The notes under the pieces were generated by a model, which worked only from the letters and a program-made list of their open reading frames with translations, was not told where the DNA came from and ran no database searches. From the NCBI GenBank assembly GCA_003693705.1, contig RBZT01000594.1, positions 16,968 through 80,967 on the forward strand: DNA of 64,000 bases, read 5' to 3'. The DNA comes from Polymyxa betae A26-41 (Eukaryota; Protista; Endomyxa: Phytomyxea). Of this stretch, positions 35,268 to 58,900 are shown one piece after another; the first letter of the stretch is position 1, and each line of letters begins with the position of its first letter. The position numbers were made by a program, and so were the translations under genes.

Positions 35268-38200
35268 ATGGGGCGCCGTCGTCGCTATCGTTCCAGGGAG
35301 ACGTTGGACCAGCTGGAACTCGAGCAGCTGATTGAGTCGCGTAAAGCGGCATATTTAGACAAAAAGCTCGGCAAGGAGCACGTCGAGCAGATCGAAGCTA
35401 GTAATGGACTGAAGGCTGCCGAGCGCGAAGTTAAGCTCGAATGTGCTGCCATCTTACGAAACATTCCGAAGAGCATGGCAGCCTCGGAGCTGGTTCAGAC
35501 TTTAAGCCAGCGAGCTGGCTTTCAGGATGAAATCATCAAGTGTAATATTCTGACTGAGAGCGGCAGCCATCATCGCTCCAACGGCAGCGCCCTAATCGTA
35601 TTCAAAACCCCGACCGATTTTCAAAAGATTGCCGATTTATGCAAGCGAGGGTTTCGTATCCAAGGGCTTGAGGTTTCAATCAAGGAGAAGGCAAATTGGC
35701 AAAGAGGCGGTTCTCGTGGGGATTGCTCGAAAGTTTTCGCGGTCATCACAATGCATTTGTGTGCTGGTGATCGAGATCTGCAATCGTTGGAGCCTTCGGT
35801 TGTTCGTTGGTCCTGCTCTAGGGATGTATCATTGCAGGTAAAATATCAGGCTCTTGGTGTCTTTGAATGTTTAAGATTTTACAGATTAATCCTCGTAGCG
35901 TTCGCCAAATAGCTATTGAATTCAATAGCCAGTTTCGCATTGAATTTCCTCTAAAAAGCATTCGTCAATCGCGACTTCTGCAAAATGCAGAAGGTAGAGA
36001 AGTCTATCGATTTCGATTGGGAGGTCCTCCACACGTTTTCGTCCGAGAATCAACCGATTCGCGTCATGCTTCTGGTATGCTTGCTAATATTCTTAGAGGC
36101 ATGAAATCCGATAAGCGGGTCTGGGAGCTTGGCGGAGGCAATTCACGCGATCACAAATGGGAGCGTACAATTGATCCTAGCGGGTTTTCAGCCTTTGGGC
36201 ACTGTCTGGTTTATGAGCTCATTCTTGGACAATCTCCTTTCAACTTGAAGGAAGTGCTGTCGCAATTCTCGATTACACCACCGGTTGTTCCTGGTGCCGT
36301 TCCAGATCCCATTGAGACCGAAGCCTTCCTAAGTGATGGCAACTGGAGCGGTGGCTATGATCATGTTTTCGAGTCGCTTCCTTTCCCAATTCAGTATATG
36401 CTTCACGCCTGTATTGCTAGTCATAAGCTTTGCCTACGAAATCGGCAAGCTGCTCAAACGCTGTATGATGCTCTCACAAATCCGGATCTTCATCCGGAAA
36501 AAGCTGTGGAGGAGCTTGAGAATTGGTATTTCGACGGGTATCCGACCAAATTTCACGAGTTGCTTGATCATCTTTCGGCAGCTGTTGAACCCGATGCCCA
36601 GCCAGAGCTTCTTGACAAAGACCCTCGCCGTAGTGCCTTAACGCGCCGAGTGCTAATTACGCCTCTCAGGATCTGCCCCCTTCCACTTGATGTTGATTCA
36701 AGTAACCGGGTTCTGCGATCCTTTTGGCGATACCGCGACCGCTTCTTGCGTGTTAACTTCTGTGATGAGGACTTCGGCAACGTCATGCAAGTCGTGCGGT
36801 CGCCAGATGTCATGGAGCGTCGCATTCGGCACTTCGTTAGTGACGGAATTGTGATTGGCGGAAGGAAATTCGTTTTCCTGGCTTATTCGAACAGTCAGCT
36901 CCGAGAGCAGTCATGCTGGATGTATGATGAAGATTATCGCGATGATGACGATGATGATGATTTCCCGTCTGCTGCCGAGATCCGAGAGTCGATTGGCGAT
37001 TTGTCTCACATTTCGGTGGTTGGAAAGCATGCTGCCCGATTAGCGCAAGCATTCTCGTCTACCATTGCTGGTGTGAGAATGTTGGATTGGCAGTATCGAA
37101 TGGTTGACGATGTTGAGCGGAATGGCTTCTGCTTCTCCGACGGATGTGGTGTTCTTTCATCTACTCTTGCTGAAAAGATTGCTGCTGAGCTTCGTCTTAC
37201 CAACGTTCCCAGTGCATTTCAAATTCGATTCGCTGGCAGCAAAGGCATCGTTGGCGTCCGTCCTTACGGTGCTATCAACATTCCAGATGTGGACTTGGTT
37301 CTTCGTAAAAGCATGACGAAATTTGTCGCTAATGAAGCGCATCGCGACTTGGAGATCTGCAACTATTCCAAGATTATGCCATGCTATCTCAACCGGCAAA
37401 TCATCAATCTTCTTTCTTGTTTGGGAGTACCTGATCGCTCGTTCCTGGATTTGGCTGATGCTATGCTCAAGTCGATGGATCATGCAATGTCGGATTACGA
37501 TTCGTGCTGCGAAATGGTTCGTGATAACGCCCCGGGATCGATTGCCGACCGCATGCTTGATGCTGGGATCAAGCCTGAGAACGACCGCCATCTGTGGGAG
37601 CTGGTTCACGCTCTTCGTGATCGTCTTCTTATGGATGTTCAAACCAAAGCTCGCATCTTCGTGCATCAGGGCCTCACTCTTTATGGGTTGATGGACGAGA
37701 CCGGCTTGTTGGAGCCAGATGAGGTCTTCTTGCAGCAATCGGATCCGCCCATGATGCTTCCGCCTGGAACTCGCGTAGCTGTGGGACGTTCGCCTTGTCT
37801 TCATCCCGGTGATATTCGAATTCTTCGCACATCTGACTGCCCAGAACTCTCAAATCTGTACGATGTGGTCGTCTTCTCTCAGCAAGGTGAACGTCCTCAG
37901 CCGAACATGATGTCGGGAGGAGATTTAGATGGAGATATTTATTTCATCATCTGGGATGAGACTTTGCTCCCGGCTGAAGAGTATCCTCCTATGGATTATG
38001 CTGCTCCTTCTCAGCAACCTGTCTCCGTCTCTGATCAAGTCGATGTTACCCACATTCAAGACTTCTTTGTGAACTACATGAAGAACGACAATTTAGGTAT
38101 CACTAAGAATCGATATTTTTTCAGTTCCATGAATTAAGTTTCTTCAGGTCGAATTGCTAATGCTCATGTTGTCTTCGCCGATCGTGCTGAAGAAGGCGCC

Positions 38201-50885: not shown

Positions 50886-53536
50886 ATGCTTGTCGTGGCC
50901 TGCGTGGCGCTCCTGGCCGCTCTGGTCCAGGCGCCGACCTCGGTTCGGCACCTGCCGTCTGACCGCCCGATCCGCTTCGAATCGGGGACGCTGGATCCGA
51001 CCTTGGCGGACACTGGCGCGGAGATCGCCGCCGGCAACCACACCTTCATTGTCCAGCTGCAAACCGCGACCGAATCCGAGCGCCGTCGTCTGTCGTCGCA
51101 GTACGGAGCTGCTTCTGGCGGTTATGTTCCGGACGCGGCATACCTGTTTTATGGGACCGCGGCCCAGTTGCGTGCCATACGAGGTGATCACTCCGTGCTC
51201 TGGGCCGGTATGCTGCCACCACACCTGAAACTATCCCTGACGCTGTCGCGGTATGCGCCACCGACGTCACGGACGCGATTTTTCTCGGTCCCGGACTTGG
51301 GGGCCCCGATACCCCAACTAGTCGTATCATTAACCGCCCCAGATGCGGACGCCGTCAGGCGCCTGCGCAAAGTTCCCGGCGTCACGAACGTGCACGCTAT
51401 TACCTCGATCCGTCTCCTACTCGACATCCATGATGCCCCGGAGTCCGTGGCGGACACCGTCTCTGCCGATCCAGCAGTGCACTGGATCGAACGGCGCCTT
51501 CGCCATCAATTCCTCAATCGATGGGCACGTTCTCTCATGCAGCAGGCCGGGGCCAACACGACCGCCGATTATGCCGCCCGGTCTGGGCTGCTGTCCTGGG
51601 ATCATGGCCTGGACGGTCACGGACAGGTACTGGCCCTCGGGGACAGCGGCCTCGACAAGCGCAGCTGTTTCTTCGCGTCGAGAAGCGAGACGGGGCCGGT
51701 GCTGTCGCCGCCGCGATCGCGTCTGTACCCGGTTGATGATGATGTTGATATGAGCGATAAGATCACTGCTTATGTTGCATATGCTGACAGTGATGACGTT
51801 ACCGGACATGGGACGCATCTAGCTGGGATTATGGCCGGAGATCCGCACCTACCTGACGGTGTCCGTGGCACTCTCCCGACATTCGCGGGCATGGCGCCAC
51901 GCGCGCGTCTCGCTATCGTCGATATCGGCGACTCCCGCGGTGTCGTACAGGTCCCGGATGATCTCGTGGGCCAGTATTTCGCTCCGATGTATGATACGGG
52001 AGCGCGGATTATGACAAGTGCCTGGGGGGCTGCTGTCCCATTATATACGCATGAAGCTGCTGATATGGATGCGTTTATGTATCAGCAGGGGGATTTTCTG
52101 GTGAGAGTCGCTGTGAAAACCCTAAACCCTGGAACCCCTAAACTCCCAGTAGGCTGTGACCGCGGCCGGCAATGACGGTGCCTGTAACGACGAGCAGACC
52201 GTGGTAACACCCGCGACCTCGAAGAACTCCGTGGCTGTGGGCGCCTCGCTGTCCCTCTCCATGCAGTATCGTAAAACCGACTTGATCCCGCCCGGATTCA
52301 AGTCCGCCACGGACCCGCACCTCTCCGCTGATCACGTCGCCGCCTTCTCCAGTAAAGGTCCCACCCGCGACGGACGCATCAAACCGGACGTACTCGCCCC
52401 CGGGTACTTCGTGTACAGTGCGGCGAGCGGCCTCGGTCCGAACCAATGCGACGGCGATCTGGGCTCCGTGGTCACACCCAATGCGGGGACCAGTACGGCG
52501 GCGGCCGTGGTGGCCGGTACGACGGCCCTGGTCCGTCAGTATCTAGTGGATGGATTCTATCCTGGCGGACGCCGTGATCCGCGTCACGGATTTGTGCCGT
52601 CTGCTGCATTGTTGAAGGCCCTGTTAGTACATAGTGCGAGATTGTTGAACGGGACCAGACAGGTGGGGGACGCCGGCATTGCGGACCCGCCACGGTGTCC
52701 GAAGCCGGCGTTCGTCCCGCTCCGCGATGATGATGACGATGATGATGATGGACCGAATATTGATCAGGGATGGGGAAGGCCCGCACTCGATCAGGTCCTG
52801 GCCTTCACTGATGACACGTTACATCTGGTCGGACGTAACAACAAGAGCGTGACGACATTCGGTGATCCGGAGATCGGGCCAGGACAGCAGCACAGGTAAA
52901 AGCGAACATTTATCGGATTTGTTTTTTATTTTTATGAAAATTTCAATTTTTTTTCTAAAATGTTTTCAAGTTGAAAGAGTGTTCAGGTATCGGTACTGTG
53001 TATTGGAATCTCAGACATTAGTCCGTGCAACATTAGTCTGGATAGATCCAGCAGCTACTCTTGGTGCAGGACTTCAGCTCGTTAACGATCTCGATCTGAT
53101 CCTGGAGCTCAACACCGCCCAGATCCGGTACGGGAACGGGGCAGCCGAAGGCGATCGACGCAATCCCGTCGAACGCGCCCAACTCCTCACTCCGAGGCCG
53201 CTCTCCGACCTCACCGTCGTCGTACAGGCCCGCCGAGTGGCGATCGGCCTATCACAGCCGTACGCACTGGTCCTAACCGGGCACGGACTCCGTCCAGGAC
53301 CGTGTCGCTCGCACCACGAGATGATCCGCGTCCCCGGGGGCCAGCACGACGTCGCCGCGGAAGGACGCGTCCTGGAGGGGGCCGTGCGCCTGTTGAACAC
53401 GGCCCGCGGACTGCGCCAAAAGCTGGTCGTGACCGAGACTGGGGCGGCGTCGTCCGGCCCCAGCCGGCTGCCGTACTGGTCCGTGCTGCCGAGCCTGTCA
53501 ATATTGCTGGCCCTGGCCGTACTGGTCCTGCTGTAA
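50886..53536 (+). CDS. Secreted S8 subtilisin-like protease (Kp43/Tag-like) with probable GPI-anchor signal; 2 introns
   Basis: Signal peptide; triad GDSG, HGTH, GTSTA; oxyanion AAGN; GRIKPDVLAPG; VNDLDL C-terminal domain; tail GAASS...LSILLALAVLVLL*. Introns 52101-52152 and 52896-52986. Confidence 0.9.
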
Positions 53537-53604
53537 ATAAACCTATATTAGATAGAGAGGCATTAGTAGCGATCGATCGATCGAGCAGCTCCTTCAGGTC
53601 GTTG

Positions 53605-55833
53605 ATGCAGCCGGAGGACGAGGACGGCGAGGAGGCCGTCGCCAATACGGCCCCGGGCCAGTACGATGTCGGTACAAGTGCGACGGAGCCGGGCCGGGTC
53701 CGGGTCGCGGTCCGTATCCGACCGACCCGACGGCGTTCGCGTGCATATCGGGTCCTGGTCCCGGCCGCCAATCAAGTCGAGGTGCGGATCGCGGACAGCG
53801 CCGCGGACGATGACGCCGCCGGTGTCCGTCAGTTCACGTTCGATGCGTGCCTTGGACCCGGAACCACTCAAGACGAGGTGTTCGCACGGATCGGTCGTGA
53901 TGTAGTGAGCGGCGCTCTGGCCGGCTACAACGGCGCCGTCCTCGCCTACGGAACCACAAACTCCGGGAAGACCTTCACCTGTATGGGATCCAGCTCCAAT
54001 CCAGGCCTCGTACCACGTATTGCCGGTGCGTGCCCCCGAACCCCGGAACACGGACCAGTACGACTGATGCGATGCGGCAATAGGGTCGATTCTGATGCGC
54101 CTGGAGGAGATGCGTGGGCGGGATCCGGACGTGACCGCCACGGTCCAGATGCAGATGTTGGAGATCTATGATGATAGTCCGTACGATCTGCTGGTGCCCG
54201 CAGCGGTGTCCGCTGCGGGTCCGTACGCAGCCCTAGACCGAGCCAAGCTGCGGGTCCGTGAGCACCCGACCCGCGGCCCCTTCTGCGAAAGTAACGACGA
54301 CGAATTCGTTCGCCAATCGCGTGCCTGAATCGCCCAATAGATTGTAGCGAGGTTCAGGTGGACGACCTCGACGATGTCCTTCACTGGATCGAGCTCGGCC
54401 AGAAGAACCGGGTCTCGGCCAGTACGGCGCACAATGCGCGGTCGTCTCGTTCGCACGCGATCGTGATCCTGAACGTGCGCCAGCACGACCGACGCACGAA
54501 CCGGACGCGCACGTCCACGCTGCATCTTGTTGATCTGGCCGGATCTGAACGGTCTACAACCGACCCTGGTAATGTTACAGGAACCCTAATACCCTAACCC
54601 CTAAACCCCGACCAGGTTCCGATCTCAGCTATGTGAAGGAGACGTCGACCATCAACTGCTCGCTGACCGTCCTGGGGCGCATTATTTCCGATCTCGCCGA
54701 TCAGGGCGAATCTCGCGCCTTTCGCCAATCCAAGTTGACATTCCTCTTGAAATCGGCGCTGGATCGGCAGACGCGCGTCTGGCTGCTGGCGACCATCTCG
54801 CCGAGGTAACGCGCCGGACAGCGTTACGGTGTCTCTGACCAACACGACAGCGAGCGGAATCATCGCGACACGATCCGGACATTGGAATACGCGCAGCGCG
54901 CCATGCGAGTCGCCGTCCAGCCGGTCTCGAATGAGTCGGCCGCTGCGCCGGACGAGAGGCGTTCACGCGAGGACGACTGGGATCGCGTCCGGCGCATGGT
55001 CAAGGTGGACCTCGACGATGCGCGACGGGACGCCGCCGCCGTCTCCGCCAAAGTCCGCGCCCTGCTGCAGCATCGCGAACGCGTCCAGGCCGAGAACCGG
55101 CGCCTGAAACAGATCGTGACACGATACGAATCGGCGCTGGACGGCGGTGGCGAGCGGGTGAGTACGGCGGTGCCGGCCATCCTCGAGTTCGCCTCCCATC
55201 ACGGACTGCTGGATGCCGCGGCGGTCGCCGAACTCAACGACGAGGATATCCGGCGTGTGATGCGTTGGGCGGCCGATCACCTGGCGGACGTTGACAAAGT
55301 CGAGCTGTCTGCCGATGAGAACGTGGCCGTGAACAAGGTACTGGCCCAGGCCGGGCTGGTGGCCGAACGTATTGATGCGATTGTGAGCGTGTCGGCCGAA
55401 CACGATTACCTGATCCGGGCGTCGCGTCTGATCGATCCGCGTCAGGCGCCCCGGCTGCTGTTCTTGCAGACGCCGCCGCATTACGACCTGGTCGACTGCG
55501 CCGTCGGCCTCCCGAATCTTGGCACCGGAGTGCACTTCGCGCGGGAACCCGACACGGATCGCGACACCGTGTTCCTCTGCGAGGTCATGGCTGGATGCGC
55601 CGAACGCCGCGGTACCGAGGCGGGCCGGTACGATTCAATTGTGACCGAGGTCGGGGTTTGGGTTGTTCACGAGTCCGATACGCTGAGCTTGGTTGCAGGA
55701 TGATGGGACGCAGCGATGGTCGTTGACGGTGTCGCACCCGTTCCAGGCCATTCCTCGCTATCGTATCCGCCTCAGGAGGCCAATACGAAGGCGGAGTGGA
55801 GAGGCACTACAGAGCTGCTGCATTATTTCATAA
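53605..55833 (+). CDS. Kinesin-3-like motor + coiled coil + degenerate PARP/ART-like domain + CaaX (CCIIS) tail; 5 introns
   Basis: VRVAVRIRP, FTFD, YGTTNSGKT, LRVREHP, NARSSRSHA, DLAGSER, FRQSKLT. Last intron 55650-55698 gives ...QAIPRYRIRLRRPIRRRSGEALQSCCIIS*. Confidence 0.85.
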
Positions 55834-55989
55834 TAATATTAAACTTTAGGTCAGTCAATGGTCAGTTAAAATAAAATGTTTGAAAAATTCCAAATATACG
55901 AGATCTTGACAAATACGGGGACCTTCGATTATCGATCATAAATGAAATGCTCTTTTTAGATGTAATCTCTTATTAGGTAATGAGGACGA

Positions 55990-58900
55990 TCACGACGCCA
56001 ACGACGACGACCTCGATCGCAAATGTTCATTCTCCTGGTGCATGGCCTGAATCTGTGCCTCCAGATCCTGGACATACTGCCTCAACGAGGCGACTTCCAC
56101 CGAATTGAACGCCGGCATTTCGTCCGAGATAATCGCCCTACACACACGGCTGTTATTATTCGGCGTCCTATCGATCGTGCAAACCCTGACCTCTCCCAAG
56201 GGTGTCGCTTAATGACTTTGAACTTGGTGTGGCCGGATCGAACCAGGACGACCTCTTCGGACCGCCGCAGGGTATACGCCGATATTAGGTTGGCGGCGAA
56301 AACATTGATGACGACCGTGTTGATAAGGAAGTAGAAGACGACGAAGAACAGGCTGGACCACATGCCGGTGTCCAGTACGGCCGGGTACAGATTGTTCTGC
56401 CAGTTGTTGGAAGTGGCCATCTGGAACAAAGCCAGGCAGGCTCCCCTGCAAGACGAAATTAGAATACCAAGGAAAGACGGATTTAGAAGCGAAACGCACC
56501 AGAATGTGTCAAATTGTTCGTCGGCAACGCCGCTCAGATCGTGAGGGTGTCCGATGCCTGCCTCCGAGAATGCCTCCAGCCCGATCGTGGCGAAGAAGAA
56601 GAACACTGGGATCAGAATGAACAGGAACTGCCATAGAATTGAACTGCTCGCGCGCAGCGTCTCCAGCAGCGGCCGTGATTTCGCCCTGCAGCGGGTCAGT
56701 ACGACGTTACTTAGCCGATTGTGCGGGCTGACCAGATAGGCAGGATACGTAAGATCCGTAAGGATCGGCTGATTATGAGTGCTGGCCCACTAAGAAAGAG
56801 CTCGGCCGGAATCGAGAATGTGAGCAGCAGCAGATCGAAGGATCGATCTGCCCAGGCCGCTATGAGGACTGCGTCAATAGTGAAACAAATGAGAGGCGCG
56901 GGACCGTACTGGGTAGGCCTTTGGCGGCTATCAGAATCAGCATCTCCACCCACATCAAGAACAGGAAGATCCAAGTCAGGAAATGGAGCTGGATCGAGTA
57001 GAGATCGGACGAATACATGAGTAAAGAAATGGCGTTGCCGACGTTCACCGCTAAACGTTGATCAGCAATGATTCCGTCAATTTGAAAGCGGCGTACCGAG
57101 CGTGAGATATTCAAAGTACTTTGAGGTTACGAGATCCGCAGCGCGAACAGCGCCGCCGCAAATCACGTCGCGCCAACATTCGCGTTCATAGCCGGGCTGG
57201 ACCGGATCGTACACTTGCGTGATGGTGTAACGAAGGATCTCGATCAGGAACATGAATTCGCGCAAATCAATGCTGTTGTTGTGATTCTTATCCAGCAGGT
57301 GGAACAGAGCCTCGCGGTGCTCTGCGGACAGCGTTGGGTCGAGTTGGCCCAAGAACATCGTGAACGTTGCCTACAAACCCGGGTTCAGTACAACATGCGC
57401 AACAAGCTGCAAAGCCCGACATGGTCTAGTACGGAGCGGGTCGAGTTTTCGGTCAGCATCTGGTAACAGCAGAAGAGGGACCTGTCAAAGCGCACGGGTT
57501 AGCATAACGATCGGCCGCAAATCGGTCGAACTTGCCGTTGTTCTTTGGCGCGATCGTGTGACACTTTGTCTGTGTGATGTTGCCGATAGAAGCGATAGGT
57601 CTCTGCCAAGACCAGGCTCATGAACAGCCAGGCGCCCATCACGAAGAACGATAGGAAGTAGACAGCGGCGACGAGCGGTCGCTCATGCAGGCCCGGCAGC
57701 AGGATGTCTGCGATAGCGGTCAGCGCAAAGATGTCGCGGGATACTCATCAATACCGGGGAAGTTCTCGGTGGTGACTAGAACGGTGAGGCCGAGGACGGC
57801 TCTCGGGAGGTCGTTGAAATTCTGAACCGAAGAGAACGGGATCTGGTTTGGGTCGTTGTAAGGACCGTCCCGGAATAGGGCGATGCCTGAGACAGCGTAT
57901 GCGAATAGTACCACCATCATACAGCCGAACAGGTGACCTGTGGCCATTTATCAAGTTTCCGCAGTCATGAGCAAAATGATAAATTAAGTCACATCGGAAA
58001 ATGAAGGGAAATAAGCGCAGATAACACAAAAACTCTACTTCAAATTAATTGGAAAAAAAAAGACTATTAAAAGGCTGGTGATTTCCGAAAACAGCACGGA
58101 AGTTAACATACCGATATTTGGGATCGTGTGAACGACAACGTAAGCGAAACGACGTAGCGGTTTGCTGCTGAGAATGGGGATCCAAGCCCGAAGCGGGCGA
58201 GAGAATCGCAGCGATGGTTTTGGATATAGCCGGACTGCGATACCGATATCGACGACGGCTGTCAGCAAGACGAAGATCAGGATTAGGTTCCAGCGCTTTT
58301 CGATGAATCGTTTAATGCCCAGCTCGACGAACTGTATGATCAAGTCGAGGGCCAGCAACGTGATCAGCAGAACCTCAATTACTAATGTCGACAACGGCGT
58401 CGCATCACACGACGTACAGACCGGCTCGAAGAAGATCAAAGACATCTGAACAGATCCATTATCATCTGGACACGAATGTCGAAACAAATTCGATTACTTC
58501 AGACAAAAGACTCATCAAAAGAACAAAACGTGTCTTATCACATGAATCATCAAACTGAAAATCACAGAAGCAAAGCCCAGGATGCGTGATAATTGTGAAA
58601 CTAATTTCACAGCAATCGAAATCAGATCGAAAAGGGGAAGCCTCGAAAACCTTGAAAGACAATCGGAAAGAACAAATCTTAAAAGTCTAAACGACCGACA
58701 TAGATGATGGAGAGCAGACGACGAACATTCACGGCGGCCCGACTTCGAATGAATTTCGTCTTGGTCCTGACCTTATCGCCTCGAGGGACAATCTGAGCGC
58801 TATCGAGTATCGTCAACGCCTGGAAAAGATTCTGTCAAGATCCGCACCTGTGCCCATCACGAGCATCCTGGGCGAATTCGACGGCGAGGCTGAGTCGGCG

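Follow-up and report, generated by a model that had tools for sequence, protein, structure and literature searches.

Can a kinesin carry within its own polypeptide chain the means of fastening itself to a membrane, and what would such a protein hold between its motor and its anchor? The question is raised by a gene at positions 53605–55833 of a 64,000-nucleotide (nt) stretch of the genome of Polymyxa betae A26-41 (assembly GCA_003693705.1, contig RBZT01000594.1, positions 16,968–80,967 of the forward strand). This whole stretch is called the window below, and coordinates refer to it unless another locus is named. A first-pass annotation made from the letters alone had described the product as a kinesin-3-like motor fused to a degenerate PARP/ADP-ribosyltransferase (ART)-like domain with a Ras-type lipid-anchor tail. 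The reading that we favor, and to which we would give a probability of roughly 0.65, is that of an expressed kinesin of 659 residues with an N-terminal motor, which would be fastened to membrane by a farnesyl group, a palmitoyl group and a basic patch.

Structure and expression of the gene

The gene was found by reading three frames and consists of six exons on the forward strand which add up to 1980 nt, that is 659 codons and a TAA stop codon, with the frame open throughout. The five introns measure 58, 50, 47, 45 and 49 nt and all of them begin with GT and end with AG. Exon 1 (53605–54025) encodes, from the start codon on, an acidic N-terminal extension and the opening third of the motor, exon 2 (54084–54290) the middle of the motor, exon 3 (54341–54568) the part with switch I and switch II, and exon 4 (54616–54805) the microtubule-binding part. 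The first part of exon 5 (54851–55142) specifies, as judged from its translation, the closing part of the motor, then VAVQPVSNES, which resembles a neck linker, and at residues ~390–446 a short coiled coil of heptads. It is followed by the helical (55143–55376, residues ~447–524) and strand-rich (55377–55649) segments of a tail domain, and exon 6 (55699–55833) encodes the last 44 residues.

The region 53500–56000 was compared with public sequencing runs, two of which, X1 and X4, come from different studies and provided Logan contigs spanning the splice sites. The introns at 54026–54083, 54291–54340, 54569–54615 and 54806–54850 appear as joints in contigs of X1 and/or X4; the 3′ end of exon 1 is given by contigs of both runs, the two ends of exon 2 by an X4 contig, and exons 3 and 4 are likewise bounded by contig joints. 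Intron 5 (55650–55698, 49 nt, phase 0) had been proposed from the letters alone and is confirmed by one X1 contig, record 8 (445 nt, depth ~4, extending 40 nt beyond the joint), in which 55647 is joined to 55697; with the cut moved by +2 this corresponds to 55649|55699. Since the five introns are skipped exactly in the X1/X4 contigs, these runs are derived from RNA and the gene is expressed. The X1 contig ends about 40 nt into exon 6, so that the last 95 nt including the codons for the terminal CCIIS rest on the genome and not on RNA.

A lipidation signal at the C-terminus

Past intron 5 the reading frame runs via SLTVSHPFQAIPRYRI, RLRRPIRRR and SGEALQS to the end of the protein. Exon 6 thus contains QAIPRYRI (55744–55767), the Arg-rich stretch RYRIRLRRPIRRR (55756–55794), the terminal pentapeptide CCIIS (55816–55830) and the TAA stop codon (55831–55833). 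The CaaX box CIIS with its stop codon occupies 55819–55833, and a second Cys adjoins the Cys of the box, giving a CC dipeptide at 55816–55821. Nine of the 13 residues of the basic patch are Arg, and the patch ends seven residues ahead of the first Cys. The last four residues have the composition expected of a CaaX box, with Cys at position −4, two aliphatic residues and a final residue of the farnesyltransferase type, and they lie at a true C-terminus reached via an RNA-supported splice. CCIIS is also the C-terminal lipidation pentapeptide of yeast Ras2p, in which farnesyl is attached to the last Cys and palmitoyl to its neighbor (Roth et al. 2002, PMC2173492). Moved onto Yck2p, it was sufficient for palmitoylation and localization at the plasma membrane, and an SCIIS version directed Yck2p to internal membranes (PMC2173492).

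The genome of the organism encodes candidate enzymes for both lipids. Repeats of the prenyltransferase alpha-subunit (PPTA) score over the cut-off at three loci, and DHHC palmitoyltransferases are found at about ten loci (best E = 2.8e-33). Among its small GTPases (loci L143, G000:C916, and L144, G000:C846:9731-13063; also L139, L140, L142 and L158) there are CaaX-type ends (..SSKTCCILV and ..KSKTCHIM) as well as Rab-type CC/CXC ends (..KSCC, ..LNCC, ..KGCC and ..SGCC). A second kinesin of the genome (locus L016, G000:C459:76813-79836, match at C459:78313-78336 on the minus strand) is minimal in build: a short coil follows the motor (GQTGSG.., SSRSH, DLAGSE), and the chain closes with ..NKRCCSIM before a stop codon. 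The occurrence of CC-a-a-X ends on this protein and on small GTPases indicates that CC-a-a-X is a signal in use in the organism, and two of its kinesins have this end. That the kinesin at 53605–55833 carries a Ras-type lipid anchor is well supported by inference: the CCIIS tail and polybasic patch of the first-pass annotation hold up in the sequence itself, in the splice joint that leads to them and in the genes for the two kinds of enzyme.

As a side observation, the second kinesin gene sits in AT-richer DNA, and its motor shows no obvious close paralogy with the motor described here.

The motor domain

The Pfam kinesin motor profile PF00225 matches exons 1–4 collinearly over profile positions 1–306 of 327, with E-values of 1.1e-20, 1.8e-4, 1.5e-19 and 2.1e-13 from the first exon to the fourth. 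Exons 1, 3 and 4 score 74.3, 70.6 and 50.4 bits, where the cut-off is 29.3, and exon 2 taken by itself lies under the cut-off. The nucleotide-binding motifs read from the sequence are intact: the P-loop GTTNSGKT (53950–53973), switch I SSRSH (54442–54456) and switch II DLAGSE (54532–54549). On these grounds the motor is a member of the kinesin superfamily, as had been claimed; it looks to be in working order, and the protein is apparently an active motor.

The assignment to a particular family fared less well. Against the PDB, exon 1 matched KIF15, KIF13B and CENP-E best, with E-values that all lie near 1e-14, and for exon 3 the top matches were KIFC3, kinesin-1 and a relative of KIF1C, so that the matches are spread across kinesin-12, -3, -7, -14 and -1 at nearly equal E-values. 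Neither an FHA domain nor any other domain was found in exon 5 by Pfam. The description "kinesin-3-like" is therefore left without specific support. The ~55 residues after the neck-linker-like stretch show, by eye, a heptad pattern with hydrophobic residues at d and an Asn at one a position, and this short coiled coil probably makes the kinesin a dimer. From general knowledge of kinesins, an N-terminal motor with a neck coil would be expected to form a plus-end-directed dimer.

An orphan tail domain

Between the coil and the C-terminal signal lies a tail of ~210 residues, a helical segment followed by a strand-rich one. It was searched as pieces of exon 5 (residues ~447–615, 55143–55649) and as exon 6, each as a separate query. 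AlphaFold places four or five helices in 55143–55376 with a predicted local distance difference test (pLDDT) of 60–74, and this segment is without any homologue. The tail gave no match in Pfam at E ≤ 1 or E ≤ 10, none in NCBIfam and PADLOC at E ≤ 10, no relative among 5.8 billion proteins in a word-indexed search, and not a single match at E ≤ 0.001 in an exhaustive phmmer search of 1.84 billion representatives. Searches of the metagenome contigs of JGI likewise returned no match, and a feature search of the ESM Atlas with the tail found nothing. ToxB, the sole PDB match by phmmer at E ≤ 10, was rejected as a chance match (E = 1.6). In the genome of the organism only the kinesin gene itself was returned and no paralogue; the tail is therefore not part of a detectable family expansion. 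The search for orthologues with a conserved CaaX box, which had been suggested as a check, accordingly yielded no homologue of the tail.

The window also encodes an RNA-dependent RNA polymerase in a single open frame of 756 codons (35867–38137; PF05183, E = 3.9e-151). It is at most 42% identical to public proteins, the best being ENA/Logan proteins and proteins of Polychytrium and oomycetes. With a conserved enzyme this far from its nearest relatives, the lineage must be very poorly sampled and the lack of tail relatives becomes less surprising; as judged from such comparisons, the organism is without a close sequenced relative.

Resemblance of the tail to PARP

The strings on which the PARP proposal was built are all present in frame 0 of exon 5, as RLLFLQT, LGTGVHFA, VFLCEVMAG and GRYDSI, the core motifs being LLFLQT (55455–55472), GTGVHFA (55521–55541), VFLCEVMAG (55569–55595) and GRYDSI (55623–55640) on the forward strand. 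PF00644 did not match the tail in Pfam at E ≤ 1 or E ≤ 10, nor did DUF3715, and phmmer against the PDB gave no PARP match even though many PARPs, RCD1 and TASOR have been solved.

For more sensitive comparison a PARP profile (A1) was assembled. The degenerate DNA pattern WHG[ST]...GxGIYFA led to at least 120 metagenome stretches, from which 40 non-redundant open frames over the catalytic domain were taken; PF00644 matched 40 of the 40. Four loci of human gut metagenomes (L036, L059, L063 and L067) and the human PARP1 chain P0128 are left out of A1. The profile is of the PARP1–3 type, and a homologue search with it listed PARP1-type proteins only; the mono-ART PARPs (PARP10/14/15, tankyrase) and RCD1 fall outside it, and the proposed tail motifs resemble these more closely.

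When the last 91 residues of exon 5 were compared with A1 by hhalign, the probability was 1.1% (P = 0.047), and the single alignment placed GTGVHFA...VFLCEVMAG on the GxGIYFA...LxxVAxG columns. Exon 6 was aligned with FQAIPRYRIRL on the last strand at P = 0.33. The hidden Markov model of A1 (HMMER, filters off) gave the tail 0.1 bits, a score equalled by 12 of 3000 shuffles. Because the loops of the candidate are far shorter than those of PARP1–3, a local profile alignment with cheap gap extension was written. It chains GTGVHFA, VFLCEVMAG and the RYDSIV region with z = 4.3–6.5, and 0–1 of 700 shuffles did as well. The score exceeds those of all 140 segments of open reading frames (ORFs) from the window itself; among 647 metagenome ORF segments 7 did as well, some of these being PARP fragments themselves. 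Exon 6 alone is at chance in this alignment. LLFLQT was never placed on the LLWHGS columns of A1, and the spacing of the motifs is shorter than in the profile by ~35 residues or more. The proposed motifs do follow one another as in PARPs, and the gap-tolerant alignment makes GTGVHFA, VFLCEVMAG and the RYDSIV region collinear with the profile.

As to the proposed loss of the His-Tyr-Glu triad, under the proposed alignment the triad would have Leu (in LLFLQT) at its first position and His (in GVHFA) at its second, with no Glu in place, but hhalign supports only the equivalence of GVHFA with GIYFA and the Leu position is not aligned. AlphaFold, run twice on single sequences of pieces of exon 5, reached mean pLDDT values of 45.7 and 44.8, with ~30 in the motif region, and a Foldseek search of the PDB with these models, too uncertain to speak for or against an ART fold, returned nothing at E ≤ 0.001 beyond helical-bundle noise.

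Whole-genome searches with PF00644, DUF3715, WGR and A1 brought up no PARP candidate, an empty result which does not show absence; any such domains may be very divergent, or split exons may have been missed. The loci with SAM and WWE domains in the genome are free of PARP motifs. A degenerate DNA pattern for GxGIYFA had one match in the genome, which was dismissed as chance.

Surroundings of the gene

Only 68 nt (53537–53604) separate the stop codon of an upstream subtilase-like gene (53534–53536) from the ATG of the kinesin, and an X1 transcript contig begins at 53556, 5′ of the ATG. The short gap and the start of this contig imply that the promoter and 5′ untranslated region take up very little space or else extend into the 3′ end of the upstream gene. 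On the other side, an X4 contig of 2057 nt, which begins near 55917, has a word depth of ~138, compared with 5–10 for the kinesin, so that a far more abundant transcript must start or end ~85 nt after the kinesin stop codon. Within the gene, intron 3 (54569–54615) is composed largely of degenerate telomere-like repeats (CCCTAA variants) and is precisely spliced in an X4 contig.

Discussion

If the kinesin is anchored as we propose, farnesyltransferase would prenylate Cys656, the Cys of the CaaX box CIIS, after which IIS would be clipped off and the new C-terminus methylated. A DHHC enzyme would then palmitoylate Cys655, and the basic patch would add an electrostatic pull toward acidic membranes. 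Fastened in this way, the motor could pull or hold membrane along microtubules to the plus ends without an adaptor, a principle that it would share with the farnesylated KinesinCaaX of trypanosomes, and the orphan tail probably provides further contacts for cargo or for regulation.

Several observations have to be set against this reading. Prenylation, palmitoylation and membrane localization are predictions from the sequence, and about one protein in a thousand has a CaaX-like terminal tetrapeptide by chance. The RNA support for intron 5 is the single X1 contig of depth ~4, which ends before the stop codon, and X16 and X11, two raw RNA runs that share the species label, were without reads in this region in the 6–12% of each that was covered; their label may belong to a host or to a mixed sample. 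In the protein databases and JGI metagenome contigs searched with the tail, no orthologue was found that could show conservation of the CaaX box. It is conceivable that CCIIS is coincidental or unused and that the protein is a soluble, lineage-specific kinesin whose Arg-rich end binds microtubules, nucleic acid or a protein partner, the more so as Arg-rich tails are generally known to serve many kinesins as secondary microtubule-binding sites. We regard this as quite improbable, given that the five terminal residues are identical to a proven and transferable dual-lipidation signal with a basic patch ahead of it, that the enzymes are present in the genome, and that the CC-a-a-X end is common to the second kinesin and to small GTPases of the same genome. 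The low-depth junction also leaves room for a main product that retains intron 5 and has neither CaaX box nor basic patch, with the spliced transcript as a minor form: the retained frame would continue for 18 codons past GRYDSIVTE to an in-frame TGA at 55701–55703, 4 nt beyond the intron. Such a product is in our view very improbable. None of the X1/X4 contigs covers the interior of the intron, which resembles the other four, all of them spliced, in its size (49 versus 45–58 nt) and its GT-AG ends, and the frame downstream of it is open for exactly 44 codons and leads to a strong lipidation signal.

A different question is whether the strand-rich end of the tail (residues ~525–640, from exons 5 and 6) has a pared-down PARP/ART fold without catalytic activity that would serve as a scaffold or binding module on the lipid-anchored motor. 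Apart from the order of the motifs, this idea draws on the best hhalign alignment, which hits matching columns, on the placement of the exon 6 stretch on the last strand, and on the gap-tolerant scores above all segments of the window and ~99% of the metagenome segments. It is also helped by the solved pseudo-PARP RCD1, which is 17% identical to PARP14 and has L333-H365-N428 at the triad (10.1101/137844); a change of His to Leu and of Tyr to His is therefore a known route of decay of the fold. The similarity appears real as a pattern, at about the 99th percentile of real-sequence controls, but is suggestive only. Since the hypothesis came from this sequence itself and could have named any of thousands of families, the 99th percentile is far from significant, and P-values of 0.01–0.001 do not survive correction for that number. 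There is further the silence of Pfam and the PDB, an hhalign probability of 1.1% with exon 6 at P = 0.33, 0.1 bits in HMMER, a blank in the ESM Atlas, two AlphaFold models with pLDDT below 50 in the motif part, and the short spacing with LLFLQT off its columns; the profile behind these comparisons is of the PARP1–3 type and does not include the mono-ART PARPs. A pseudo-PARP/ART module in this tail is thus without significant support and stands as a hypothesis founded on resemblance at the level of motifs, which we consider unlikely. The complete arrangement, in which a motor anchored by farnesyl, palmitoyl and basic patch would carry a reduced pseudo-enzyme of ART fold whose triad begins with Leu-His as in RCD1, we hold to be distinctly unlikely.

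If the proposed alignment is right, the tail and the RCD1/SRO pseudo-PARP of plants (PDB 5NGO; 10.1101/137844) share the replacements of His by Leu and Tyr by His at the first two positions of the triad, and the tail domain would be a scaffold without catalysis. However, RCD1 can be recognized as a PARP domain by its structure (root-mean-square deviation 1.45 Å to PARP14), with WWE and RST domains on either side of it, whereas the tail has no PARP signal in Pfam or the PDB and none that is significant in hhalign, and is far shorter between the motifs.

Closer parallels to the favored reading, a lipid-anchored motor, are found among the farnesylated kinesins. KinesinCaaX of T. brucei (Tb10.389.1270) has an N-terminal motor, a coil and a terminal CVIM; it is farnesylated, and loss of the CaaX box disturbs its localization (PMC3206815). 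The present kinesin has the same order of N-terminal motor, coiled coil and C-terminal CaaX box, and both proteins are without a standard kinesin family assignment. KinesinCaaX, a protein of 832 residues reported only in kinetoplastids, ends with CVIM and a single Cys and hence has no palmitoyl site; compared with it the kinesin of the window adds a second Cys, the basic patch and the orphan globular tail. Outside the motor there is no sign of orthology between the two in the exhaustive phmmer search with the tail (1.84 billion representatives, E ≤ 0.001). CENP-E (kinesin-7) is also farnesylated (PMC10630089) and shares with the present protein its plus-end-directed motor, in our case as predicted, and a C-terminal farnesylation signal; exon 1 has it as one of its top PDB matches, though no better than KIF15 or KIF13B. 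It differs in its ~2700 residues, its very long coiled coil and its kinetochore-binding regions, and its farnesyl group serves the assembly of the kinetochore corona and not as a Ras-type anchor. With yeast Ras2p the terminal pentapeptide CCIIS is shared to the letter (PMC2173492), but Ras2p is a small GTPase, while in the present protein the signal is attached to a motor and accompanied by a K-Ras-like basic patch.

In view of these cases the statement of the first-pass annotation that no kinesin of such architecture has been described can be upheld for the PARP-like part but not for the lipid anchor, given KinesinCaaX (PMC3206815) and CENP-E (PMC10630089). A literature search on kinesins with a PARP catalytic domain found no described fusion, which is weak evidence of novelty and would be of consequence only if the fold proved real. 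As far as its sequence tells, the present kinesin is a variant of the known theme of farnesylated kinesins, with a double-lipid signal and a basic patch. Were the tail a pseudo-PARP after all, it would be the first fusion of a kinesin with an ART fold, a PARP-derived scaffold would be carried on membrane along microtubules, and the known uses of the fold would be widened.

Most kinesins reach membranes via adaptor proteins. A motor with its own Ras-type double lipid anchor would represent a simpler coupling between membranes and microtubules, and self-anchored kinesins have so far been documented only as single-farnesyl cases, in the trypanosome KinesinCaaX and, in a different role, in CENP-E. 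Since farnesyltransferase inhibitors act on such proteins, the kinesin would be a directly testable target. That a single small genome, from a poorly sampled flagellate, has two kinesins with CC-a-a-X ends suggests that this solution arose more than once.

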